A stretch of DNA of 64,000 bases from Corallochytrium limacisporum Hawaii (GCA_002811645.1 PDIP01000007.1:1-64000); one strand, 5' to 3'. Positions 1,892 to 59,715 are shown, counted from the first letter of the stretch. The notes: a model not told the origin generated them from the letters alone. Made by a program: numbers and translations.

Positions 1892-3488
1892 TTCAATGAT
1901 TTCAAACGGGCAGCAGCACACTCCCATCACACACCTGGCCACCCACGCAGACAAAGTTAAGAGCAAGTACCTTGTATTGCCGACATTGTGCTCGCGTTTG
2001 CTCTCTGTCCAGCAGCAAGCTGGGACTGTCAGGTCACTCAGTCGCAGCCACAAGCACCAGCCACCCAAAAGAAAACAGAAAGCGAAATGTATCGGATGCA
2101 TGTGCTGTTAGTGTGGCGGTAAAAACGGGGCGAAGTATGGGGATGGATCCAGGTTTTTCGTTATGCCTTCCGGCCTGCCTATTCCCGCTGGTGACAATGT
2201 GTGTCAGCCTCGGTGTGTGTGTGGTGTGGTGGAAGAGCGGCCCCTCCGGAAGGGGGGGGGGAGTAGTGGGGGCGGTGTTGGTGGATGACTGAGCTTGTGT
2301 TGTTGGTGTGAATCCGAACACAGACAAATCGTTTTTCCCATCACCGCGCGTTGTGTGCGTGAGTGTGTGTGTGTGTGTACGAGCCTGGTATTGTTTGCTT
2401 GCAAGCTGATGGCTGCTCATGCAATAGGGTTCAGAAGTATCAAAATTTGCCCTTGTGTTTGTCCTATGAATCACATATGGACAGTGCTCCGGCAGGTACC
2501 TCAGGAAGCGCCTTGAATCAGTCCAACACTGGGTCAACAACGTGTTTTTCTTGGTACCATACGAGCTTGCAATAAAGAAATTTCAGCTGCAAGTCTACGT
2601 CGCCATCTACTGTGAGCAGACCGAAAGAAATTTCTGTCGACGGTCGGTGGCCCACGAGGGTAAAACGATCCACGTTCGGGTTAACAGAGAACTCACGAAG
2701 CAACGGCAGACTTCGGGAACTGATCTGCTTGTCAGGCAGCGGTTCTGGAGTGAAGAAAGAACGGCTTTTGCGAGTTTGAATCGGGCAAGGCAGTCCCCTC
2801 GACTGTTTGGTTTGCAAGAAGGTAGTTGACATTTCATTTTGCTCACCAATCGTTTTCTATTTTTAGGTGTTTCCCCCCGTTTTTAGGTGAGAACTTCCTG
2901 TTGGTGCTTGTCCCAGAAAAGACAACTTCTTTGGTCAGCGTTTAGTGCAGATCGGAAAAAGTCTTGGTGAGTATAGCATTTCAGTTTGGTAACCTTTTTG
3001 GAAAGACGCAGTCGCTATCTTTTCCAATTCGTTTCGAAGTTGTACACTAGTCCAAACAAGGAACATCCGCACCGGTTCAGGTCAGATTGTTTTGGAACCT
3101 TATTGCAGAAGGGAAGGAAAGAAAGATCAGTCATCGGAGGGTAACCGCGGTCAGACAAATGCACGGAAAGTTTTTGAAATTTTAGCGGTTTCGGAACCTT
3201 CTCTGACATTGGAAAGCATATTCAACTTCTGATCTTGAAACATATTTAACTAGTAGCAACAACAACAGCAACAACCAGCAAACACAAGAACTCCCAAGAG
3301 GCGGTGAGAAACATTTGAAAGGAAGAAGCAAGAGAGTGCGAAGTATTCAAGAGGACTACTCCAGAAACTTTTTTGCTCCTGTTTTTCACCACAAACAACC
3401 AGTCAGCTTTTTCTTTGTTTTCACAAAACTTTAGTCATCAAAGCGAGCATAGACACGAGAACGCAGAATACGAAAACAGACTACCACC

Positions 3489-5195
3489 ATGAATGCAAAA
3501 GGAGGTCAAGGCAGTGACGAGGTTTACCAATTTCTCGTCCACGATGCCGAACTCGAAGAATCTGTGGCGGAATCAGTAGAACAAACATTCAGCGAACAGG
3601 CAATCGATACGCTAAAGGATGTCAAGCTTCTCAGCAAGGACGACCTCAAAGATCTTGGCCTGTCGATGGGTATTCGCAACCGCATCATCAAGGCCCTGCA
3701 GGCAGTAGAGTCGCGGCCGGAGCCCGTGGCTGCTGCCGCGGCTGCCCCAGCGGCCGCTGCGCCTGCCCCCGCCGCAGCTTCCAAGCGGGGACGCGGAGCC
3801 GCTGCTGCCCGTGCTGCCGCAGCTGTCCAGAACACCAGCCCGCCCACCGGCTCTCGTGGTAAGCGTGGCGCCGCCACCCGGACCGCTGCCGCCGCACCGA
3901 CGCGAGCCGGCCGCGGACGCGCAGGGAAGAACGCTGCCCCTGCCCTGCACGCGGGCGAAGACGACGACGACGAAGAGGCTGCTACCGCCGCCGCTGCAGA
4001 GGCCGCTGCCGCTGAAGAGAGTGCGCCCGCGGCTCCGGACGCGGTGCAGACCGGCTCCAAGCGCAAGACTGCACCTTCCGGCTCCGACAGTACACCTGGG
4101 CGCTCCGGTGGCGCTAGCACTTCGGCTACCCAGCAGCCATCATCCCGAAAGCAGCGCAAACGCGAGAAGGCACCCCCTCCGGACCCCCAAGAGATGCGCC
4201 AATTGCGTGACCAGCTCGCTGTCCTGGGGAAGCGCATTAATGTCTTCAACAAGTCACACAGCATCCGACAGAAGGTCTTTGGCCTAGCCGTCCTAAACAA
4301 GGGCAGCCAAGGCCACGTCAGCATGGTGCTGAGTGGTGGTCGGGAGGTCAAGAATCGCGACACACTGGTCAAGTATCTGGAAGCTTTGCAGAACTATGAT
4401 CTGATGAGCGATGATGCCCGGCTTGGCCTGTGTCAACAGGTGGCACAGCAGCTAGACAGCCAGGAGAGTGGTACTGCGGGTGGCACAGCTGGCCGCGCCA
4501 ACGGAGGCGGTGGCAGCAGTGTGGCCGCCGATGATTCGGCCAGCAATTCGCCGCGGCAGAACAACTCGAACACTGGCGCCTCCACTCCGCGCAACAAGCG
4601 CAACACGTACTCGCTCGATGAAAAGATTGTACTCGATTCTTTCTTCTGGCACAATCAAAAGCCTAACACTGCAATGCGGCAGGACATGGTCGCCAAGTAC
4701 AATGAGTATTTTGGCGATGCAGGCAACAAGATCACCCTACAGCAACTGCAAGTTTACTACTCCAACCGGCGCCGTCGTTTGACCCAAGAAGAGGCCAAAC
4801 ATCTGCAGCAGTTTAGCCCCAATTCCACGAAGCCGGTTCCGACGCCTCATGAAATACTGCATAGTGATTTCACACAGCACGGGGCCGACATGATGCGTGG
4901 TATTGGTCGTGGGCCGCATACGCCGCAGCCGAGTAGCTTGGCTAGCCACGCGCAGAACCTGGCCCAAGGTCTAGGCTCCCGCGGTAAGAAGCACTCGTAC
5001 AATACCGCATCCGGATCAGGAGCAGCGGCACCCGGCACGCCTACCACAGGTGGACAGCAACAGCAGACGGGCTCGAGGACGTCCGCGCGCAGCGCGGGAG
5101 CAGCCGCGAACGGACTAGCGGCGCCGACAAGCGGTCGCACGACACGCAGTGGTGCTTCCCCGACGCGCGGTCGGGAGGCGGCTGCTGCACTTTGA
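3489..5195 (+). CDS. SAM + CUT-like + atypical homeodomain transcription factor (568 aa)
   Basis: Kozak accaccATG. N-terminal SAM (…LLSKDDLKDLGLSMGIRNRIIKAL). CUT-like HSIRQKVFGLAVLNKGSQGHVSMVL. Homeodomain RNKRNTYSLDEKIVLDSFF…ITLQQLQVYYSNRRRR. Ala/Gly-rich linkers. Confidence 0.85.
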   Translation: MNAKGGQGSDEVYQFLVHDAELEESVAESVEQTFSEQAIDTLKDVKLLSKDDLKDLGLSMGIRNRIIKALQAVESRPEPVAAAAAAPAAAAPAPAAASKRGRGAAAARAAAAVQNTSPPTGSRGKRGAATRTAAAAPTRAGRGRAGKNAAPALHAGEDDDDEEAATAAAAEAAAAEESAPAAPDAVQTGSKRKTAPSGSDSTPGRSGGASTSATQQPSSRKQRKREKAPPPDPQEMRQLRDQLAVLGKRINVFNKSHSIRQKVFGLAVLNKGSQGHVSMVLSGGREVKNRDTLVKYLEALQNYDLMSDDARLGLCQQVAQQLDSQESGTAGGTAGRANGGGGSSVAADDSASNSPRQNNSNTGASTPRNKRNTYSLDEKIVLDSFFWHNQKPNTAMRQDMVAKYNEYFGDAGNKITLQQLQVYYSNRRRRLTQEEAKHLQQFSPNSTKPVPTPHEILHSDFTQHGADMMRGIGRGPHTPQPSSLASHAQNLAQGLGSRGKKHSYNTASGSGAAAPGTPTTGGQQQQTGSRTSARSAGAAANGLAAPTSGRTTRSGASPTRGREAAAAL

Positions 5196-7974: not shown

Positions 7975-9183
7975 TTACGCGCTCATGTTCTCAATGATTG
8001 TGGCCGTGGCCTGACCGTGACCAATGCACATTGTCTGCAGGCCGTACCGCTTGCCGGAACGCTCCAGTTCGTTAACCAACTTAGTCATCAAAATGGATCC
8101 GGTGGCACCAAGTGGGTGACCCAGGGCGCAGGCACCACCGTTTACATTGACTCGGTCCAAGTTGGGAATCTTCATCTGCTTAGCCCAGCCCAGGACGACA
8201 CAGGCAAATGCTTCGTTGACCTCAAACAGATCAATGTCATCCATGGTCATACCGGCCTTCTCCAAGGCCTTCTGTGTAGCAGGAATCACACCGTCTAGCA
8301 TGACCACGGGGTCGGACGCGACGACGGCACGGGAGAGGATACGTGCGCGGGGCTTCAGACCGGCAGCCTTGGCACCCTCCTCACTGGCGAGAAGGACGGC
8401 TGCCGCACCGTCACTGATCTGGCTTGCGTTACCGGCCGTGACCACACCGCCTTCCTTGAAGACGGTCTTGAGCTTGGCCAGGTTCTCCAAAGACGCGTCA
8501 GGCCGGAATCCTTCGTCCTTCTTCAGGACAGAGCCATCCGCAAGCGTCAGAGGAACGATCTGGGAATCGAAGCGACCCTCAGCCCAGGCCTTGGCAGCCT
8601 TGTGGTGGGACTCCACAGCAAATTCATCACATTCGGCCCGTGTTACTCCATACTTTTCCGCCAGCAGTTCAGCACTCACGCCCTGGTGGATCAAAGGGTA
8701 GGGGAACTCCTTGACAAACTTAGTCTTTTCCTTGCCAAAGATGTCAGTGTCAGAGCCCATCGGTACAGTGCTCATCCATTCTGTGCCGGCACCAATGGCC
8801 ATATCCATATCCCCGGCACTGATCGCCTGTGACGCGAAGTGAATCGCCTGTTGCCCACTGCCACACATACGGTTGATCTGAATGCCAGGGACCTCAATGG
8901 GCAGGCCAGCACTCAGGGCAGCGAGACGTCCGACATTGGCACCTTGCTCTTTCAGGGGGGTCACGCACCCAGCCACCACATCTTCGACCTTACCCGTGGC
9001 GTTGTCTGGCACCAGCTTGTTCAAGACCGCAGCCAGTGCGTTAACAGGGTGGATGCCACCGCCAGTCTTGGACTTGGGGCCCATGGCGGTAGTACCGTCG
9101 GGTCGACCCTTGGCTACTGCGGTACGCAGAGCGTTGACAATGTACGTGGGCCGGGAGGCCTGCGCGAGAGGTTGTGCAGACAT
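7975..9183 (-). CDS. Acetyl-CoA C-acyltransferase (thiolase), bacterial-like
   Basis: Catalytic motifs NRMCGSG, NEAF, GHPLGATG, MCIGHG. Confidence 0.95.
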   Translation of the reverse strand: MSAQPLAQASRPTYIVNALRTAVAKGRPDGTTAMGPKSKTGGGIHPVNALAAVLNKLVPDNATGKVEDVVAGCVTPLKEQGANVGRLAALSAGLPIEVPGIQINRMCGSGQQAIHFASQAISAGDMDMAIGAGTEWMSTVPMGSDTDIFGKEKTKFVKEFPYPLIHQGVSAELLAEKYGVTRAECDEFAVESHHKAAKAWAEGRFDSQIVPLTLADGSVLKKDEGFRPDASLENLAKLKTVFKEGGVVTAGNASQISDGAAAVLLASEEGAKAAGLKPRARILSRAVVASDPVVMLDGVIPATQKALEKAGMTMDDIDLFEVNEAFACVVLGWAKQMKIPNLDRVNVNGGACALGHPLGATGSILMTKLVNELERSGKRYGLQTMCIGHGQATATIIENMSA

Positions 9184-11629: not shown

Positions 11630-13150
11630 ATGAAACGAAACTCTGTTCAGAGTTTCGGGCGCTTCATTGGCTTTGATATGAATTATCGCACTGTGGTCAA
11701 AGTGCTGCTCATATGGGCACTTGTTGCGCTGTTGGTGTACTCAGGCGCGAGGTCTCAGAAGGAAAAGATAACTTACGAACAGACTGAAGCAAATTCATAC
11801 GATGGGATCTTGGAAGACTTCGGGTCGAGCAATAATGACGGAAACAACGGACACCAGAACCCATCAGTGATCTGCGCTGTATCGCTTGAAAGGTTGTACG
11901 ATGTCGGCCAATTTCACAAACGGTTTCTTGACCTGGCCGTCGGGAAATGGTCAAAAGGTCACACGTTTTTAAACAGAATTGAATTCTCCGAGTCTCAGAA
12001 CTTGATCATCGCCGGACACAACCGAGATGGAATGTCTTTGTTCAAGCACATTGAGGCCTGGGTTTTGGGTCCACAGGCACAGCAGTCTTCGGTGTCAGCG
12101 AACTGTACTATGAGGAGCTGTTTTGATTTTTCACGGTGTCGAAATGGGAATCGTGCCGTGTTCATATATCCTCGCACAGACGGTGATGAGAGACGATCTC
12201 CAGTTGATGAATTGGACGGGGACGACTGGCGAATGCAGCAGGTTTTAAAGGCTCTTCGTGCGGGTAGTAAACGCATTACCATCACTGAGAATCCCGACGA
12301 GGCCTGTCTCTTCATTCCGCACATCACACAGAACCACCGTCCGTGGCATGAATTGGATCATTGGCATTCGAATGGACGGAACCATGTCTTCTTCACATGG
12401 CATGACGAGGCGGGACTTTTCCTCGAGCGAATTGGAGATATTGGTGATGCCATAGTGGCTAAAACATCATTTCCCATCGTGAACACGCACACTTGGCTGA
12501 AGAAGAATCGTGTCTATCGCCCACATTTTGATGTCAATCTGGGACTCGAATATAAGAAGAGCTACTTTAAGGAAAACTTGGCGCCAATCAATGAGCGAAA
12601 GTTTCTCCTCAGTTTCAAAGGAAAGCGTTACACGGAGAAGGGAGGCACTTCGCGATCGTCACTTTACCGAATTACGGAAGGAGACTCAGGAGACGACATT
12701 CGATTGTGCATGTCGTGTCAACACTATAACCAGCCTCGGGATGAAAGGTGCGATGCAGATGACAAGATGTATCAAGACAAAGAGCTCTGTGACTTTGATC
12801 TTTTGATGAGAGAGTCAAAATTCGGCCTTGTGCCAGAAGGAAAGCAATTCTCCAGTTATCGCCTTGCTGAAGTTTTGAGCGCAGGGTCCATTCCAGTCTT
12901 CGTCGGTGAAGCGTCGCATTTGCCGTTTGCAGAGGTCATCGACTGGCCTTCATTCTCATTCTACTTCCATCCAGACGACATTCATGACATGGGCACAATG
13001 TTGCGATCCTTGCCTCCCGCTGCTCTGGAGGCGAAGTCACAAGCCGCCAGATACGTGTTTGAACGATACTGGGATGGTGGCTACTCTGCTCCTTTGGAAT
13101 CGGCGGTAGAGATCATTTTGCAAAGAGTAGAAGAACTTGACAATAACTAA
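11630..13150 (+). CDS. Exostosin-family (GT47) glycosyltransferase, EXT1-like, type II membrane protein
   Basis: N-terminal TM helix; CTMRSCFDFSRC, NGRNHVFF, FKGKRY, DERCD, FGLVPEG…SYRLAEVLSAGSIPV, LPFAEVIDW. Start may be the ATG at 11678. Confidence 0.9.
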   Translation: MKRNSVQSFGRFIGFDMNYRTVVKVLLIWALVALLVYSGARSQKEKITYEQTEANSYDGILEDFGSSNNDGNNGHQNPSVICAVSLERLYDVGQFHKRFLDLAVGKWSKGHTFLNRIEFSESQNLIIAGHNRDGMSLFKHIEAWVLGPQAQQSSVSANCTMRSCFDFSRCRNGNRAVFIYPRTDGDERRSPVDELDGDDWRMQQVLKALRAGSKRITITENPDEACLFIPHITQNHRPWHELDHWHSNGRNHVFFTWHDEAGLFLERIGDIGDAIVAKTSFPIVNTHTWLKKNRVYRPHFDVNLGLEYKKSYFKENLAPINERKFLLSFKGKRYTEKGGTSRSSLYRITEGDSGDDIRLCMSCQHYNQPRDERCDADDKMYQDKELCDFDLLMRESKFGLVPEGKQFSSYRLAEVLSAGSIPVFVGEASHLPFAEVIDWPSFSFYFHPDDIHDMGTMLRSLPPAALEAKSQAARYVFERYWDGGYSAPLESAVEIILQRVEELDNN

Positions 13151-13412: not shown

Positions 13413-15299
13413 TCATGCACTCGGCATGACAAAGTTGAGCAATTTTTTGGTTGTCGGCGACAGTTTCGTCCGACGATACGCATCGCCAGTCTGCCGGATC
13501 GCCTCCGCCACCGTTGGGTACGGATGTATCACACTGGCCAGAGTGCCTAGGCCCATGTTACTGCGCATTGCCACACTTATCTCCGAGATAAGATTACCTG
13601 CATCATTGCTAACAATGGTCGCACCCAGAATCTTGTCACCGCCTTTGGCAACATGGATCTTCACAAAACCCGCGATGTCTCCCTCGAGGATGGCGCGGTC
13701 GACATCTTTTAATTCACGCGTATACGTATCAATTTCAATGCCCTTCTCCTCAGCGTCCTTCGCGTACAGGCCCACATGCGCGATTTCCGGTTCAGTATAT
13801 GTGCACCAAGGGAGAAGCAGGCCTTTGACCTTGGAGCCAAGCGGGAACAATGCATTCCGAATAACCGCCCGCGCCATGAAATCGGCATGGTGGGTGAATT
13901 TTAACGCCGTTGCGCAATCTCCAGCGGCGTAGATGTCCGGATTCGTGGTCTGCAAGTAGTCATTGACCGTCACACCACTCTTAGAGTACTCTACTCCGAC
14001 CGTTTCCAGTCCAAGTGGCTCTAAATTCACGGCACGGCCCACTCCGAGCAGCAGTGCCTCGCATTCGCACTGTTTCGATTCTGTGGATTCGTCTCCTACA
14101 GTATACTTAACTATAGCAGCCGGGGTCTTTCCACTGATCTCCGAGATCTTGCAGCTGGTCACCACGTCAATACCGTCCGCCACCAGCTGGTCGTGAATCA
14201 CGGCGGCGGCGTCTGGATCTTCACGGATCAAAATCTGCGGTGCAACCTCGAGCAACGTGACCTTCGTTCCGAACCGCGCAAAGCTCTGCGCCATTTCGCA
14301 CCCAATTGGACCAGCTCCAATGATGACCATTGACTTTGGCAAGGAGGTTAGAGTAAATATTGTTTCGTTGGTGTAGTACCCGCTCGTATCCAGGCCCTTG
14401 ATCGGCAGTGCAACAGCGCTAGAACCCACCGCAATACACGCCTTACGGAATTTGAGATCTTTGCCGTTTACACTTACGGTATTCGGGCCCGTGAACTTGG
14501 CCTCGCCCATGAATACATCAACCCCGACGTCTCGAGTGAATCGCTTGACAGAATCGTTTGCACTAATCTCCGCACGGATCCGTCGCAGACGTTCCATTAC
14601 CACGCCGAAATCTACGCCGCAGCCCTCACCACCGGTCAGTCCGAACTCTTTGCCCTCCACACGCGCGGCGTGGACAGCACGAGCAGACCTGATTAGCGCC
14701 TTGGACGGAACACAACCAGTATTCAGACAATCTCCTCCCATCAGTCCTTTCTCTACGATCGCGACCTTGGCACCAACTCCGGCACCGCCAGCTGCCGTGA
14801 CCAAACCAGCGGCACCAGCACCAATCACCACCATGGTGTACATATCGCGCGGTTCGGGATTTTTGTAGTCTTGGGGGTGTACGTTAGCCCCTAGTGCTTT
14901 GTTGTACTTGTCCTCGTACGGCTCCAGGGACTCTGCAGCCGGGTGGTTTGGCTTACCGCTTGTTTGATCAGAGCCGGAGCCGAGAAGGAAGAACTCCGGG
15001 TTCGCGCCAATCGATGGTGACTTTTCATAGAAAAAGTAGCCATCCTTAAAGTCATGGTCCTTGGTCACATGGCGAATGATTCCTTCCCTCAAGAATGGCT
15101 CTCCAAACCGGGTCACAGCATCCTCTCGTGAGGTGGCCAGCTCCTGATCAATTAGTTTGTCCACCAACTCAGAGCCCACAAAGCACGATTTGTAGGTTCG
15201 AAACCGGTAGGATCGGTCCGTGATCTCCACAGTATTTTCGCCATCCAGAACCTTGCGGTAGGCAGCAAGTAGCTCGTTCCCTTCTGCAGCTTCTGGCAT
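13413..15299 (-). CDS. DEP domain fused to pyridine nucleotide-disulfide oxidoreductase (MerA/Lpd-like)
   Basis: DEP: DRSYRFRTYKSCFVGSELVD…HVTKDHDFKDGYFFY. Reductase: GAGAAG, GGDCLNTGCVPSK, GAGPIG, YAAGD, HPYPTVAE. Confidence 0.9.
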   Translation of the reverse strand: MPEAAEGNELLAAYRKVLDGENTVEITDRSYRFRTYKSCFVGSELVDKLIDQELATSREDAVTRFGEPFLREGIIRHVTKDHDFKDGYFFYEKSPSIGANPEFFLLGSGSDQTSGKPNHPAAESLEPYEDKYNKALGANVHPQDYKNPEPRDMYTMVVIGAGAAGLVTAAGGAGVGAKVAIVEKGLMGGDCLNTGCVPSKALIRSARAVHAARVEGKEFGLTGGEGCGVDFGVVMERLRRIRAEISANDSVKRFTRDVGVDVFMGEAKFTGPNTVSVNGKDLKFRKACIAVGSSAVALPIKGLDTSGYYTNETIFTLTSLPKSMVIIGAGPIGCEMAQSFARFGTKVTLLEVAPQILIREDPDAAAVIHDQLVADGIDVVTSCKISEISGKTPAAIVKYTVGDESTESKQCECEALLLGVGRAVNLEPLGLETVGVEYSKSGVTVNDYLQTTNPDIYAAGDCATALKFTHHADFMARAVIRNALFPLGSKVKGLLLPWCTYTEPEIAHVGLYAKDAEEKGIEIDTYTRELKDVDRAILEGDIAGFVKIHVAKGGDKILGATIVSNDAGNLISEISVAMRSNMGLGTLASVIHPYPTVAEAIRQTGDAYRRTKLSPTTKKLLNFVMPSA

Positions 15300-47642: not shown

Positions 47643-50600
47643 ATGGTGGGAGTAAAAGCGTCCACGGCCGAGGATCTGGCCGTCGCATTGGCAGCAGCCA
47701 TCGTGACAGGAGACTCTGCGTCTGCGGTCACGGCCACTGTCACGGGAAACGGTTCTTACGCCGTCAACGGCGTAGCTGATCTCTCGTTTGCGACTGCAAT
47801 TCGGGCCATTGCTCGCACAAACTACCAGAAACTCTACGGAGAGGGTCCTACTCAGGCCTCTGAAACAGACACGTGGATCACCAAAGGTCCCCTGCTGGCA
47901 AAGCCTGGTAAGGACTACCAGACCGCACTCAAAGAACTTGAGACTCACCTGGAGATGCGCAACTTCCTTGTGAACATGGCGAGGCCTACCGTCGCAGATG
48001 TGGTCGTTTGGTGTGCTCTACGTACAAATCCTAGCTTTGCACGGGCCGTGGAATCTGCGGGATTCCAGAAGGGACAGCCAGCGGTCGCCCGGTGGTACCT
48101 TCATTGCAAGGCCCTGGAGCATTTCAGCACGGTGGAAGTGGTTTCTGCCGCGGCCGCCCCAGGTGCGGGTAAGGAAGGCAAAAAGACGAAGGGTGGCAAA
48201 GGTGACGCTGCAGCCGCTACGGCTGGTAGTACCGTGGGTGGAAGTGATCTAGAGAGGTACGCGGAACTCCCCGACGCGGAGATGGGCAAGGTTGTCGTGC
48301 GCTTCCCGCCAGAGGCGTCCGGTTACCTGCACATTGGTCACGCCAAGGCAGCACTGCTCAATGCCATGTACGCACGTCGCTATAAGGGCAAGTTAATCCT
48401 GCGTTTCGATGATACAAACCCCGTGAAGGAGAAAGAAGAGTTTGAGAATGCCATTTTGCATGATCTGAAGCTGTTGAAGATCACACCAGACGTTCATAAC
48501 CACACCAGTGATGTTTTCGATCTGCTGGCTGAGCTCTGTACTCGCATGATCAAGGAAGGCAATGCCTACGTTGATAACACTGACGTGGACACCATGCGTC
48601 AAGAACGAATGGACGGTATCGATTCAAAGAACCGCAATCTGTCCGTGGACGAGAACATGCGCCTTTGGGGTGAGATGCAGAAGGGCTCTGATGAGGGGTT
48701 GTCCTGCTGTGTGCGTGCTAAGATTGACATGCAGGCAAAGAACAAGGCAATGCGGGACCCTGTGTTGTACCGCTGCTCGCTCGAGCCTCATGTCCGCACC
48801 GGCACCAAGTACAAAGCGTACCCCACTTACGATCTAGCGTGCCCTATCACCGACTCCATTGATGGTGTCACACATGCCCTGAGAACTTCCGAGTACAATG
48901 ATCGAAACGATCAGTATTGGTGGATCCTTGATGCGCTCGGCATGCGTAAGCCTCTCATCGTGGACTACGCCCGTCTCAACATGGTCTACACTCTGCTCTC
49001 CAAGCGTAAATTGACATGGTTCGTTGAAAACGGTGTGGTCACGGGCTGGGACGATCCGCGCTTCCCTACGGTACGTGGTATCCGGCGCCGCGGTCTGACA
49101 GTTGAGGGTCTGACCGAGTTCATCGTCCAACAGGGCGCCAGCCGTTCTACCGTCCTCATGGAATGGGACAAGATCTGGGCTGTGAACAAGAAGGTCATAG
49201 ACCCAACGGCTCCTCGCTACAATGCCGTCCTCGGCAGAACTGTTCTCAATATTGTAGACGCCAAGGCTGAGACCGTTGAAGTCCCGCTACACAAGAAGTT
49301 CCCCGAGATGGGCACAAAGATGATGGCCCGCGGTCCCAACGTGCTTCTGGAGGCCGAGGATGCCAAGGATATTATGAACGGCGAAGAAATCACACTCCTA
49401 GACTGGGGTAACGTAGTAGTAGACAAGGTAGAGAAGGACACTGACGGTACTGTGAGCTCGCTGCAGGCCCATCTGAATCTCAGCGGTGATGTCAAGAAGA
49501 CCAAGAAGAAACTGCACTGGGTACTAGCCGATGAAGCCAACGAGACCCCCATGATTTTGCAAGAATTTGATCTTCTGATTACTAAGCCTAAAATTGAGGA
49601 GGGGGATGAGTTTTTGGACTACGTCAATGAGAACTCCAAACATGAGACTCCCATTATCGGCGAGCGTGCTCTAGGTTCCGTGAAGGAAGGCACCATTCTA
49701 CAGCTGCAGCGCCGCGGGTTCGTCATTGTGGATCGTGCCTACAATGCCAAATCCAAGGAGCCCATGGTGGTAATTCTCATCCCAGATGGCAAGACCAAGG
49801 GAATGAGCACCCTCAGCACCAAGGTACAGCCTATTGGTGGCCGTACTAAGGACAAGACCATCCATGCCCCTCCAGTGAAGGCCGAGAACAAGAATGAGGC
49901 TGTGCAGGCCAACGGTGGCGCAGTGGACTCCGACATGGAGGCCAAGATCGCTGCTCAGGGCAACAAGGTGCGCGAACTGAAGGCGGCGAAGGCTGATCCT
50001 GCCACCATCAAGGCAGAGGTGGCCAAACTGCTGGAGCTCAAGGCCTTGGCCGGTGTGAGCACTGGTGGCCGAGAGTCCAAAAAGAAGGGCAATAAGGATC
50101 AGGCTGCTGCCAACGGTGGCGCCGAAAAGCCCAAGGAGATTGACTTCAATTCACTGTCCCCTGAGGCCAAATCAGTTGCGGATGCTATTGCCGCAGACGC
50201 GGAAAAGGTTAAGAATTTACAGATCTCTGGCGGTGCCCAGGAAGAGGTCATGGCCCTGGTGAAAGAAATGAACACCAAGAAGGATAAGTTTAAGCAGATC
50301 ACTGGTATTGCCTACAAGGCTCCCAAGAAGAAGAAGGACAATGATGCCAACCTTACAGAGGAGGAGAAGGAGAAGCGTAAAGCGGAGAAGGAGGCCATTA
50401 AGAAGGCTCGTATGGAGGCGCAGAAAGCTGCAGAGAAGGAGCGGAAGAAGGAGAAGAAGGCCCAACAGAAGACAGTGTCCAAGGCCGCGTCAGGTGCTGC
50501 AGGTGCCTCTGGTGGTGAGACTGGCAACCAGGACGGCATCCAAAACCTGAAAGAGGGCGAGTTTGCGGAATGGTACCAGGAAGTCCTGACGAAGGCTGAG

Positions 50601-52082
50601 ATGCTTGAGTACTACGATATTTCGGGCTGCTACATCCTGCGTCCGTGGTCATACGAAATGTGGGAGATTGTCAAGACCTGGTTCGATGCCCGCATCAAGA
50701 CCATAGGTGTGAAAAACTGCTACTTCCCAATGTTTGTGAGCAAGGCTGCCTTGGAGAAGGAAAAGGATCACATCGACGACTTCTCTCCGGAGGTGGCCTG
50801 GGTGACACATAGTGGTCAGTCCCAGATGGAGGTGCCCATTGCTATCCGTCCCACCTCGGAGACCGTTATGTATCCCGTCTACAGCAAGTGGATCCGTTCT
50901 CACCGTGATCTGCCGTTGTTATTGAATCAGTGGAACAACGTCGTCCGTTGGGAGTTCAAGCATCCGCAGCCTTTCCTGCGTACTCGCGAGTTCCTGTGGC
51001 AGGAGGGCCATACTGCTCACCCAACATGGCAGTCCGCGGAAGCGGAAGTTTTGGTAATCCTTGACTGGTACCGCGGCATCTACGAGCAGCTTATGGCCGT
51101 CCCCGTCGTGCCCGGTCGCAAAACGGAGAAAGAGAAGTTTGCCGGTGGCCACCACACGACAACCGTCGAAGCCTACATCCCAGCCTCCGGCCGAGCAATC
51201 CAAGGTGGCACCTCCCACTGTCTCGGTGAGAACTTTAGCCGCATGTTCGACATTCGCTACGCGGACCCCACCAAGGCTGGCCAAGAAGACACCATGACCT
51301 ACGTTGTTCAGAACTCATGGGGTATTACGACTCGCACCATCGGTGTGATGGTCATGGTTCACGGTGACAACAAGGGCCTTGTGCTGCCTCCTCGGATGGC
51401 CTCTGTACAGGCCGTGATCATACCCTGTGGTATCACCGCAGCCATGTCCGAAGAAGACAAGAACAAGCTCCTAGACAAGTGCCACAGCCTGGCTAAGGAG
51501 CTCGCACCCGTAGCCAACAACGGCAACCCTGCTGCCGTGCCGAAAATTACCCGTGACTACCTCCGCGTCATCACGGACACCGCGGAACACGTCAGCCCCG
51601 GATGGAAGTTCAACCATTACGAAGTCAAAGGCGTGCCCGTCCGACTCGAGCTCGGTCCCCGTGACTTGGCAGCCAATCAAGTTTTGGCTGTGCGCCGTGA
51701 CACTGGAGAGAAGGTTGCGTTGAGCATGGATGGCCTTGCAGACTCCCTGGCCGAGCTTCTGGAAACGATGCAGGCCGACATGTTGGCACGTGCCACCAAG
51801 GAACGGGACGAGCGCGTGCTGGTGGTCGAAACCTGGCCCGAATTCATCAAAGCCCTGGAGCGCGGCTGTCTGTGCATAGTGCCCTGGTGCCGCCGCACAG
51901 AGTGTGAAGACGACATCAAGGATTCCTCCAAAGGTGCCGATGAGACTCCTGGCGCTCCATCTATGGGCGCCAAGTCCCTGTGTATTCCCTTCAAGCAACC
52001 CAAGGAGATCACGGCCGATTCCAAGTGTGTTAAGTGTGGTCAGAAGGCTTTAGTGTACTGCATGTTTGGGCGTAGCTATTGA
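47643..52082 (+). CDS. EPRS1: Bifunctional glutamyl-prolyl-tRNA synthetase
   Basis: GST-like N-terminus; GluRS RFPPEASGYLHIGH and LSKRKL; WHEP linker; ProRS IRPTSET, FLRTREFLWQEGH, C-terminal FGRSY. Confidence 0.97.
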   Translation: MVGVKASTAEDLAVALAAAIVTGDSASAVTATVTGNGSYAVNGVADLSFATAIRAIARTNYQKLYGEGPTQASETDTWITKGPLLAKPGKDYQTALKELETHLEMRNFLVNMARPTVADVVVWCALRTNPSFARAVESAGFQKGQPAVARWYLHCKALEHFSTVEVVSAAAAPGAGKEGKKTKGGKGDAAAATAGSTVGGSDLERYAELPDAEMGKVVVRFPPEASGYLHIGHAKAALLNAMYARRYKGKLILRFDDTNPVKEKEEFENAILHDLKLLKITPDVHNHTSDVFDLLAELCTRMIKEGNAYVDNTDVDTMRQERMDGIDSKNRNLSVDENMRLWGEMQKGSDEGLSCCVRAKIDMQAKNKAMRDPVLYRCSLEPHVRTGTKYKAYPTYDLACPITDSIDGVTHALRTSEYNDRNDQYWWILDALGMRKPLIVDYARLNMVYTLLSKRKLTWFVENGVVTGWDDPRFPTVRGIRRRGLTVEGLTEFIVQQGASRSTVLMEWDKIWAVNKKVIDPTAPRYNAVLGRTVLNIVDAKAETVEVPLHKKFPEMGTKMMARGPNVLLEAEDAKDIMNGEEITLLDWGNVVVDKVEKDTDGTVSSLQAHLNLSGDVKKTKKKLHWVLADEANETPMILQEFDLLITKPKIEEGDEFLDYVNENSKHETPIIGERALGSVKEGTILQLQRRGFVIVDRAYNAKSKEPMVVILIPDGKTKGMSTLSTKVQPIGGRTKDKTIHAPPVKAENKNEAVQANGGAVDSDMEAKIAAQGNKVRELKAAKADPATIKAEVAKLLELKALAGVSTGGRESKKKGNKDQAAANGGAEKPKEIDFNSLSPEAKSVADAIAADAEKVKNLQISGGAQEEVMALVKEMNTKKDKFKQITGIAYKAPKKKKDNDANLTEEEKEKRKAEKEAIKKARMEAQKAAEKERKKEKKAQQKTVSKAASGAAGASGGETGNQDGIQNLKEGEFAEWYQEVLTKAEMLEYYDISGCYILRPWSYEMWEIVKTWFDARIKTIGVKNCYFPMFVSKAALEKEKDHIDDFSPEVAWVTHSGQSQMEVPIAIRPTSETVMYPVYSKWIRSHRDLPLLLNQWNNVVRWEFKHPQPFLRTREFLWQEGHTAHPTWQSAEAEVLVILDWYRGIYEQLMAVPVVPGRKTEKEKFAGGHHTTTVEAYIPASGRAIQGGTSHCLGENFSRMFDIRYADPTKAGQEDTMTYVVQNSWGITTRTIGVMVMVHGDNKGLVLPPRMASVQAVIIPCGITAAMSEEDKNKLLDKCHSLAKELAPVANNGNPAAVPKITRDYLRVITDTAEHVSPGWKFNHYEVKGVPVRLELGPRDLAANQVLAVRRDTGEKVALSMDGLADSLAELLETMQADMLARATKERDERVLVVETWPEFIKALERGCLCIVPWCRRTECEDDIKDSSKGADETPGAPSMGAKSLCIPFKQPKEITADSKCVKCGQKALVYCMFGRSY

Positions 52083-57919: not shown

Positions 57920-59671
57920 CTACGTAGGCGGAACAAAGTCTGCACAAAGCTCGTACGTAAGTTCACGGAGAAGGAAGCGGAGGCGGACTTCGCTCCCAGT
58001 AAATAGGTAGCTCAAGCTGGCATGTTCACGGTTTTTGCGTTTTCGGTGGTCCATGGGCCGGCACACAGCTTTGCGTTCGTTGACGAACCGCTCTACTTTG
58101 AAATGGTTTGCTTTGTGCAGGTTGCGAATGAACAACCACAGATCATCAGTGTTGCCACGAACAGCACACAAAACAGCACCGAACTGTCCATCTGGTGTGC
58201 TGCACAGTGCCCATGGCTCCGGGTAAGAATGTACATCGAATTCATTAAGACAGCCCATGTGATGAAGCTCATTGAGCTGAAGACAACGGAAGGTCAGTGA
58301 GGTAGCGAGCTGAGGGACTTCGTGGATCGCCGGAGATGGACTCTCGGCCGCATCCATGTGTTCTGAGTCGGGTTGTAGCAGCAGACCAAAGCGCACCTGC
58401 GGGTGTTCAAGATCAAGGCTCATGCTATTCCAGCAATAATCACTGCCTTCCGGATTCAAGGGAAACATATACTGGCACATGCCCTGCCGCACATCAATGT
58501 CTGATACACGATAATCAGAAAATTCCCACACAGGGTTGAAAGTGATTTTGCCGTCCTTGACTTCAAGTTGGAAGATGATCTGTCCCAAAGCGCCTCCCAT
58601 ACCATCTTTGTAGACGAATACAACCGAGTTGATATACTTGCAGGCGATTCCGGTCTCCGTGTCCGTGCGATCCCATCGCCTAGGGAGGACCATCCACTTT
58701 TCGATGCGCCGATCCAGCTCAAAACGACATAGTAGCCGTTCTTCTTCACCAGGACCTTTGTCAACGTACATGACACGCAAGTGTGAGTGATGAGCGCCAC
58801 GTTCTTCAACAAAGATTAAAGGTCCAGAGTGCTCAATGGCCCAAATCTGCGAGAGACATTGAAACTGATACTGATGCAGCTTAGGCTCCGGGAGCATCGT
58901 ATTTGAGATCACCTGGAAGCAACCCACGTGGCCCATGCGGGTACCGTAGAAGATGAAGTCCTCGTAACCATCTCCACCGGCACAGAGAGTCACAATGCTG
59001 CGCGGACTGATACCAATGCGCAGCGGCCAGTACGTATGCAGTGAGAATGGCATACCAGCCGCCCGTACGCTGCCCGGGGTCACGCGTTGCACTTCTAGAG
59101 CTGGGCCGTCGGCATGGAGACGGGCTGCCACAGTTCCGTTGAATACATCTGACAAAGGCAAACGCACGTTATTCCGGATGGAAAGCTGAAGCTTTTGCGA
59201 ATGGGGATGAACCATACATCTCGATAGATTACCCGCCAACGATAGGTATAGTTGCAAATTCCGGACGCTCTCCTCTGCGGGTTTTCCAGCACCCAACATG
59301 TTTTGCCAAATCCAAGTTTGCTGGTGAGGCTTTTTCATATATGCATCTGCGTACCGTGTATAGAACATTAGGCTCTCGTCTGTCTCCATCAAGAGCTCCA
59401 GGAAATACCGGCTCACGTATTGTAGTTCTTCAATATCTCTAGGTTCCAGGTGCATCAAGATCATGTACATCACTTCCCGTGGCAGTAGCTGCAGCATGTT
59501 GCACGTCGACTTGTTTCCAAGGTGTGCCCATAACCGGAACTGCTCTTCAACACCTAAGCTGTCCAATACCCCGATTAACTGAGCCATATTGGGTTTGCTA
59601 TGCATCTTCTCTAGCGAAGGCCCGTCTACGGCAGCGGCAGCTGCCGCGGCGGTTCCTTCTTCCCGCACCAT
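57920..59671 (-). CDS. F-box protein with unassigned beta-rich C-terminus
   Basis: LLPREVMYMILMHLEPRDIEELQYVSRYF F-box motif. First ATG at 59671. Confidence 0.75.
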   Translation of the reverse strand: MVREEGTAAAAAAAVDGPSLEKMHSKPNMAQLIGVLDSLGVEEQFRLWAHLGNKSTCNMLQLLPREVMYMILMHLEPRDIEELQYVSRYFLELLMETDESLMFYTRYADAYMKKPHQQTWIWQNMLGAGKPAEESVRNLQLYLSLAGNLSRCMVHPHSQKLQLSIRNNVRLPLSDVFNGTVAARLHADGPALEVQRVTPGSVRAAGMPFSLHTYWPLRIGISPRSIVTLCAGGDGYEDFIFYGTRMGHVGCFQVISNTMLPEPKLHQYQFQCLSQIWAIEHSGPLIFVEERGAHHSHLRVMYVDKGPGEEERLLCRFELDRRIEKWMVLPRRWDRTDTETGIACKYINSVVFVYKDGMGGALGQIIFQLEVKDGKITFNPVWEFSDYRVSDIDVRQGMCQYMFPLNPEGSDYCWNSMSLDLEHPQVRFGLLLQPDSEHMDAAESPSPAIHEVPQLATSLTFRCLQLNELHHMGCLNEFDVHSYPEPWALCSTPDGQFGAVLCAVRGNTDDLWLFIRNLHKANHFKVERFVNERKAVCRPMDHRKRKNREHASLSYLFTGSEVRLRFLLRELTYELCADFVPPT

Positions 59672-59683
59672 TGATGTGGACAA

Positions 59684-59715
59684 CTAAGTGCATGACATCT
59701 TTCAGCATCACATAC
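59684..59715 (-). other. Candidate 32-nt 5' UTR intron of the F-box gene
   Basis: G|GTATGT…CACTTAG| ends 12 nt before the ATG and contains 4 upstream ATGs. Confidence 0.45.

Follow-up and report, generated by a model that had tools for sequence, protein, structure and literature searches.

The window analysed here comprises bases 1-64000 of contig C264 (PDIP01000007.1) of Corallochytrium limacisporum Hawaii, and the genome searched was the corresponding assembly (GCA_002811645.1; 24,109,830 bases in 286 contigs). On the plus strand, positions 3489-5195 hold an intronless open reading frame (ORF) of 568 amino acids with the start codon context CCACC-ATG. It encodes a SAM domain, a low-complexity linker, a CUT-like domain, a further linker, an atypical homeodomain and a low-complexity tail. 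The ORF is preceded by a probable long unspliced 5' leader of at least 830-930 nt (2553-3488, plus strand), drawn from the contigs of two probable RNA runs, which start at 2553 and 2662 without a splice joint; such contig ends are not transcript starts. A single ATG is found in the 936 nt of the leader (position 3159), where it opens an upstream ORF of 8 codons in the frame of the main ORF.

The SAM-CUT-like-homeodomain gene is native and real, and it is apparently under constraint. Coverage of the ORF is unbroken in DNA-run contigs and in the two probable RNA runs, which belong to separate studies. A second isolate differs by seven substitutions within the ORF; six are synonymous, and the remaining one, A150V, falls in the linker. 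The third-position GC content (GC3) of the ORF is 0.64, and the genes of the window span 0.53-0.68. The ORF starts at base 3489 of a contig of more than 150 kb with intron-poor genes and matching GC3, and the protein is present in EukProt. The first-pass annotation had supposed a non-animal contig, and this is confirmed: the contig is that of C. limacisporum, whose assembly also carries a LIM-LIM-homeodomain gene of the published type and a gene held in EukProt as Clim_evm20s235. Only the prior expectation that CUT is animal-specific speaks for animal contamination, an assembly chimera or a spurious ORF. Set against this are the contiguity in runs from different studies, the mostly synonymous strain differences, the setting of the contig and a protein unlike any animal protein, so that contamination is ruled out for practical purposes.

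Other genes of the window deserve brief mention. An intronless ORF of 1479 amino acids (47643-52082, plus strand) presumably encodes a fused glutamyl-prolyl tRNA synthetase with WHEP-like linkers, as read by eye. Positions 11630-13150 (plus strand) encode a GT47 glycosyltransferase of the Exostosin family (Pfam E 3e-33), for which no GT64 match is seen. On the minus strand lie an intronless, Pfam-confirmed thiolase (7975-9183), which by eye we take to be bacterial-like, and an ORF that resembles flavin disulphide reductases and has an additional N-terminal domain (13413-15299).

The N-terminal SAM domain (aa 9-76; 3513-3716, plus strand) is a putative self-association module. The first-pass annotation had placed it at about 3513-3705, and it is recovered by Pfam SAM_2 at aa 29-73 with 27-31.5 bits (E 2e-7), above the cut-off of 20.5. 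Its matches in the PDB (the SAM domains of ARAP2, ANKS3, EphA4 and Bicc1) are weak, and no close SAM relative was found in the Corallochytrium genome or in the database searched. SAM domains are attached to DNA-binding domains in the ETS proteins TEL/Yan, in plant LEAFY and in p63/p73, and in TEL/Yan and LEAFY they drive oligomerisation and cooperative binding. These proteins share with the Corallochytrium protein the combination of a SAM and a DNA-binding domain, whereas their DNA-binding domains are of other kinds. By analogy with TEL/Yan and LEAFY, SAM-mediated self-association of the Corallochytrium protein is plausible. The SAM domain is followed by a low-complexity linker (3717-4181, plus strand), rich in Ala, Pro, Arg and Gly and then acidic, which bears RG-type motifs and, at 4146-4169, a basic stretch resembling an NLS; any function of the linker could be ascribed only by inference. 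The C-terminal tail (4794-5195, plus strand) is of low complexity and rich in A, G, S, T and Q; no Pfam family matches it, and it is possibly an effector region.

The middle of the protein contains a CUT-like domain of five helices and lambda-repressor type (aa 233-327; 4185-4469, plus strand). The first-pass annotation had correctly recognised a CUT core, although its range of about 4215-4390 was too short for the modelled helices. Helix 2 begins with Q261, and the recognition helix carries S273-Q274-G275 and S278. The Pfam CUT family (PF02376) matches aa 248-282 with 17.3 bits when the whole protein is searched and with 21.7 bits (E 2e-4) when the domain is excised. This match covers model positions 12-45 of 79 and stays below the curated cut-off of 24.4 bits, so that the Pfam check proposed earlier gave a CUT match of sub-threshold score. 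CUT nevertheless ranks top among 24,736 Pfam families for this domain, and the domain is the sole PF02376 match of the 24-Mb genome (E 0.013). Searches of the genome with the HNF-1_N, Pou, DUF7726 and CUTL profiles gave no match, nor did a direct comparison of the domain with HNF-1_N (E<=10), and the protein has no Pfam match to Pou (PF00157), HTH_3 or ULD.

For closer comparison, 37 invertebrate Onecut/Cux CUT repeats were taken from metagenomes; five vertebrate-looking and possibly human metagenome contigs (L009, L013, L054, L082 and L107) were left out of all alignments, profiles, models and trees. Seven of the nine residues that are invariant in helices 1-3 of these repeats are kept (Q, F, S, Q, G, S and L). 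The alignment of the Corallochytrium domain to the 37 repeats by hhalign has a probability of 92% (E 6e-7), and a purpose-built CUT profile gives 19.9 bits, compared with 11.9 bits for the best of 20,000 shuffles. The core of the Corallochytrium domain is 32-43% identical to animal CUT repeats, most so to Cux repeat 3 (43%), and 14-17% identical to the canonical HTH_3 domains of the genome; for scale, Onecut and Cux cores are 37-44% identical to each other. The two glutamines are separated by 13 residues, as against 12 in CUT and 11 in HTH_3, which corresponds to a longer turn between helices 2 and 3. From the helix-3 glutamine to R5 of the homeodomain there are 97 amino acids in frame, within the 72-129 found in animal Cut and Onecut, and only about 3e-5 of six-frame positions fall within 200 amino acids upstream of any of the roughly seven homeodomains. 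At C143:36305-36379, the C-terminal half of the CUT profile finds a match of 17 bits. This second match is probably due to chance, since it lies in an unrelated ORF of 1712 amino acids with a weak match to the SET-domain group, and helices 1-3 are missing. It also sets a genome-wide noise floor close to the score of the CUT-like domain; the case for CUT-likeness is therefore carried by position and invariant residues.

The first-pass annotation had noted that the PKPW motif is absent, which is correct, and the loop between helices 3 and 4 is short. The CUT domains of SATB are likewise not known to have PKPW. The C-terminal half of the domain does not rise above shuffles with Onecut/Cux profiles and, used alone, retrieves nothing relevant from the PDB. 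It can be aligned to CUT given a short deletion, and a possible resemblance to SATB is a lead only.

A proximity of scores to the noise floor could also be expected if a helix-turn-helix (HTH) domain other than CUT, either bacterial XRE/Cro or DUF7726-like and eukaryotic, had been recruited independently beside a homeodomain, in which case the likeness to CUT would reflect shared HTH chemistry. The two glutamines are common to phage repressors, and DUF7726 is the top feature match of the domain in the ESM Atlas (0.83, a score that, being below 0.9, counts as a lead only). Nevertheless, this explanation is very improbable, given the CUT-specific F and G, the longer helix 2-3 turn, the first rank of CUT in Pfam and the lack of DUF7726 and HTH_3 matches or of a phage Cro/cI match, which another HTH-homeodomain gene of the genome does have. 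As a separate observation, language-model features place DUF7726 (PF24852; its top cluster is mostly oomycete) level with CUT, HNF-1_N and Pou, and it is possibly a non-animal relative of these domains.

The fold was approached by modelling. AlphaFold without an alignment gave an unusable model (pLDDT 56), and the model used was seeded with CUT rows over aa 246-282. It contains five helices with a mean pLDDT of 91, and helices 4-5, which lie outside the seeded stretch, are placed at pLDDT 91-95. The top six Foldseek matches are all CUT domains, the first being Cux2 CUT1, and the top four of the Atlas structure ranking are CUT domains as well (TM 0.63-0.69). With VIA, CUT domains reach Z 8.2-9.9 over 75-88 residues, values that are modest for a helical domain, where the level for caution is about 13; the best is SATB1 CUT1 (Z 9.9, 83 residues), along with Onecut (9.2-9.4) and Cux2 CUT1 (9.2). 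POU-specific domains reach Z 5.2-6.2, and HNF1A reaches 5.1 over 64 residues. Since CUT sequences seeded the model, the ranking is in part circular, and it speaks for the compatibility of the domain with the CUT fold rather than proving it. The lambda-repressor-like fold expected from the first-pass annotation is thus present in a partly CUT-guided model whose best matches are CUT.

The homeodomain (aa 367-435; 4587-4793, plus strand) is atypical. Pfam Homeodomain matches aa 368-430 with 20 bits in the whole protein and 24.3 bits in the excised domain (cut-off 22.9), and the numbering bears out the R5, Y8, L16, F20, R31, N51 and R53 of the earlier annotation. It also has Y48, Y49, S50, R54 and R55; four arginines follow Y48-Y49-S50-N51. 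Nine extra residues lie between helices 2 and 3 (loop 2). Its best match in the PDB is HMBOX1 of the HNF class (E 0.0096), and Oct-1 comes next in a search with both domains. The Onecut and Cux homeodomain profiles give 3.4 bits each, less than for the other homeodomains of the genome, in a comparison that did not include the SATB and CMP homeodomains. CUT-class homeodomains often fail to form one group in trees (PMC2211742). Within the class, ONECUT and SATB have F48, a non-W48 residue, and CMP has a loop-2 insertion of 10 amino acids. Such insertions arose repeatedly and are poor markers of class.

These features raise the question of class. In a tree of 37 columns, built without HNF, SATB, CMP or animal POU sequences, the Corallochytrium domain joins CUT (support 97/94), two HTH_3 domains serving as outgroups. 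No HNF or dve reference gene turned up in the pattern scans, of which the one over all loci took in the five vertebrate-looking contigs as well. With one CUT profile, the Corallochytrium domain reaches 18.1 bits, little above the HNF domain of HNF1A (14.9), while SATB2 CUT2 scores 27 and SATB1 CUT1 35-37. By Atlas features, again leads only below 0.9, HNF-1_N and CUT tie for the middle domain (0.83 each), and the HNF cluster comes first when both domains are taken together (0.79 vs 0.78 for CUT). The protein might accordingly be a stem member of the lambda-HTH and homeodomain group, sister to CUT plus HNF or an early HNF, with the same bipartite binding and without being specifically CUT. The homeodomain relatives HMBOX1 and Oct-1, the insertion at the HNF position, the short helix 3-4 loop and the missing PKPW would fit such a placement. 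We regard it as unlikely. The insertion measures 9 amino acids against 15-21 in HNF, HNF-1_N itself does not match, the CUT-invariant F and SQG are present, and HNF1A falls well short of CUT in VIA.

Because the class signals are mixed, the protein is filed here as CUT-like. On its sequence and modelled fold, it appears to work like a CUT-homeodomain factor, and it is at most a putative member of the CUT class. The claim of a CUT-class factor is supported as regards the core and the spacing and is compatible with the partly CUT-guided fold model; it lacks support as regards class membership, where the missed Pfam cut-off, the silent C-terminal half, the 3.4-bit homeodomain and the proximity to HMBOX1 weigh against it. 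The wider claim of a CUT-like domain and homeodomain in a unicellular holozoan is supported, since the contig is non-animal and the modelled fold best matches CUT.

The genome of Corallochytrium contains two different genes that combine a lambda-type HTH with a homeodomain. The other one, Clim_evm20s235 (contig C267, about 59300-59700, minus strand), encodes a POU-type homeodomain with Q50, immediately preceded by an HTH of the Cro/XRE type (aa about 250-310). Oct-1 and Pit-1 align to it over both their POU-specific domain and their homeodomain (E 6e-11 to 8e-10). Its HTH is 47% identical to phage Cro/cI domains, lacks the six-residue POU insertion and scores with HTH_3/HTH_31, not with Pou; it is possibly a transitional form on the way from a phage-type HTH to the POU-specific domain. 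According to Gao et al. (PMC11564870), a survey that included Corallochytrium, the POU-specific domain occurs only in two choanoflagellates, and a figure also marks POU-like homeoboxes without it. The remaining homeobox genes include the LIM-LIM-homeodomain gene (C250:28197-28367), already published for Corallochytrium (PMC5560861), a gene with an N-terminal non-TALE homeodomain, R50 and a long acidic tract (C264:151113-151253), a TALE gene (C181:190511-190681) and a divergent homeodomain (C205:16399-16575).

Relatives of the SAM-CUT-like-homeodomain protein in other organisms were also sought. No homologue was found by word search with aa 225-440 or the SAM domain, by phmmer over 1.84 billion representatives or in the metagenome contigs searched, and an exact contig look-up had no match. 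A marine metagenome run with a 7% share yielded repeats only, plus one read-sized piece of 151 bases. Because the searched collections hold no homologue, vertical descent requires many losses, the claim rests on a single species and there is still room for an old transfer from an animal. In such a transfer, a piece of Cux with repeat 3 and homeodomain, or an Onecut gene, would have been acquired, later fused to SAM and strongly diverged. Cux repeat 3 is the homeodomain-adjacent repeat, and in the best tree the Corallochytrium domain sits on a long branch within the Cux repeats. Coral-reef lagoons are the habitat from which the species was described, and CUT is reported absent in sponges, placozoans and ctenophores (PMC6125248). 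However, the tree does not reject placement outside all animal CUTs (p-AU 0.14; 37 columns are too few to resolve the matter), the homeodomain lacks a Cux or Onecut signature, GC3 is ordinary, and the genome has LIM- and POU-like homeobox genes as well. Patchy retention is moreover documented for Sox and POU (PMC11564870). Transfer is therefore rated improbable, and the "pre-metazoan", vertical origin is likely, on one species.

In the paper on the Corallochytrium genome, CUT is counted among the homeobox families that are new in animals (PMC5560861); a survey published later places the origin of the class in the common ancestor of cnidarians and bilaterians (PMC6125248). An old proposal holds that CUT and POU arose in an early animal through the capture of a phage-repressor-like domain (PMC1976457). 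In the literature covered, which did not extend to subscription papers, reports were found neither of a CUT outside animals nor of a gene of the Clim_evm20s235 type, and another SAM-CUT-homeodomain architecture appeared neither there nor in the database searches, in agreement with the novelty first suggested for it. On sequence and model evidence, what appears to be new is that a unicellular holozoan has a SAM-bearing, CUT-like homeodomain factor. Domain surveys may have missed the gene because its CUT score and, for the whole protein, its homeodomain score stay below the Pfam cut-offs.

The reading we favour, at a probability of about 0.55, is that the gene encodes a native transcription factor whose bipartite DNA-binding module is homologous to that of animal CUT-homeodomain proteins, came down from a unicellular holozoan ancestor and received an N-terminal SAM domain. 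The contact residues of SATB1 have equivalents in the Corallochytrium protein (Q390 = Q261, T401 = S273, Q402 = Q274, G403 = G275 and S406 = S278), with the exception of E407 and R410, in whose places stand M279 and S282. In SATB1, Q402A and G403A lower binding about 50-fold and about 10-fold, respectively, and a purine-A-T core is common to CUT domains (PMC1976457). ONECUT2 uses the same S/Q, the homeodomain N51 and an arginine pair at 54-55 (PMC11490551); N426, R429 and R430 correspond to this N51 and arginine pair. As in CUT-DNA structures (PMC1976457, PMC11490551), helix 3 of the CUT-like domain would enter the major groove, where Q261 would position Q274 (ONECUT2 Q365) for the reading of adenine, and S273, G275 and S278 would make the same base and backbone contacts as in SATB1. 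A purine-A-T core is expected because the SATB1 contact residues have these equivalents. The homeodomain would bind a neighbouring half-site via R5, N51, R53 and the R54/R55 pair, similarly to the ONECUT2 RR motif. M279 in the place of the CUT D/E, together with S50, would shift specificity off the Onecut ATCGAT/ATCAAT site; since the acidic residue and the arginine of helix 3 are replaced, the exact binding site probably differs. By analogy, the protein is taken to be a bipartite binder that reads AT-rich DNA in the major groove. The SAM domain may link molecules head to tail and thus give cooperative binding at clustered AT-rich sites. It would do the job of the ubiquitin-like CMP/ULD, which serves the SATB tetramer and Compass, by means of an unrelated fold.

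A broader proposal takes in both genes and is put forward tentatively, at somewhat less than even odds. The lambda-HTH and homeodomain group may already have split into CUT-type and POU-type members in the still unicellular ancestor of Holozoa. Corallochytrium would have kept both, namely the SAM-CUT-homeodomain gene and Clim_evm20s235 with its unexpanded Cro/XRE-like HTH, and SAM would be an independent solution to SATB-style oligomerisation. If this is true, the origin of CUT shifts to the holozoan root from the stem of animals or of cnidarians and bilaterians, and that of POU shifts there from Choanozoa. If the inheritance was vertical, CUT-type DNA recognition predates multicellularity, and if the kinship holds, the CUT-homeobox regulator family is older than animals. 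The finding also bears on the proposed capture of a phage-repressor-like domain by CUT and POU (PMC1976457). Stable transfection works in Corallochytrium, as cited in PMC8061703, so that direct tests of the ancestral function and of the binding site are feasible.

Several known systems invite comparison. In choanoflagellate POU factors (Gao et al. 2024, PMC11564870), a class of lambda-HTH and homeodomain proteins once taken to be animal-specific is likewise patchy in unicellular holozoans. They belong to another class and have been biochemically tested, whereas the Corallochytrium protein is known from sequence and its lineage is deeper. The POU class in general differs by C50 instead of S50 and by PF00157, which does not match. 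The HNF class (HNF1A/B and HMBOX1) shares a lambda-type domain and a homeodomain in which extra residues separate helices 2 and 3. It differs in the length of the insertion (15-21 vs 9 amino acids), in A50 instead of S50, in the lack of an HNF-1_N match and in the VIA score (Z 5.1). CUX/cut proteins provide the repeat with the highest core identity (43%) and, with Cux2 CUT1, the first Foldseek match. They have three CUT repeats, a coiled-coil N-terminus and H50, whereas the Corallochytrium protein has one CUT-like domain, neither of the other two features and 3.4 bits on the Cux profile.

The ONECUT proteins (HNF6/ONECUT1 and ONECUT2) have, like the Corallochytrium protein, a single CUT-type domain at similar spacing before the homeodomain. 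The S-Q-G recognition helix, non-W48 and the R54/R55 pair are common to both, and VIA gives Z 9.2-9.4. The differences are the missing PKPW loop, M instead of D370, the 9-residue insertion in the homeodomain, S50 instead of the Onecut M50, 3.4 bits on the Onecut profile and the N-terminal SAM domain. SATB/COMPASS proteins (CMP, dve) do not match in number of domains, as the Corallochytrium protein has one CUT-like domain and one homeodomain, and its homeodomain has S50, not K50 (as in COMPASS) or Q50. The ubiquitin-like CMP/ULD is replaced by SAM, and no ULD or CUTL match is present. CMP homeodomains, going by their description and not by direct sequence comparison, have a loop-2 insertion of 10 residues, close to the 9 seen here, and SATB1 CUT1 is the best structural match of the CUT-seeded model. 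The order is also the same: an N-terminal self-association domain, a role that is putative for SAM, is followed by a CUT-type domain and then by an atypical homeodomain.
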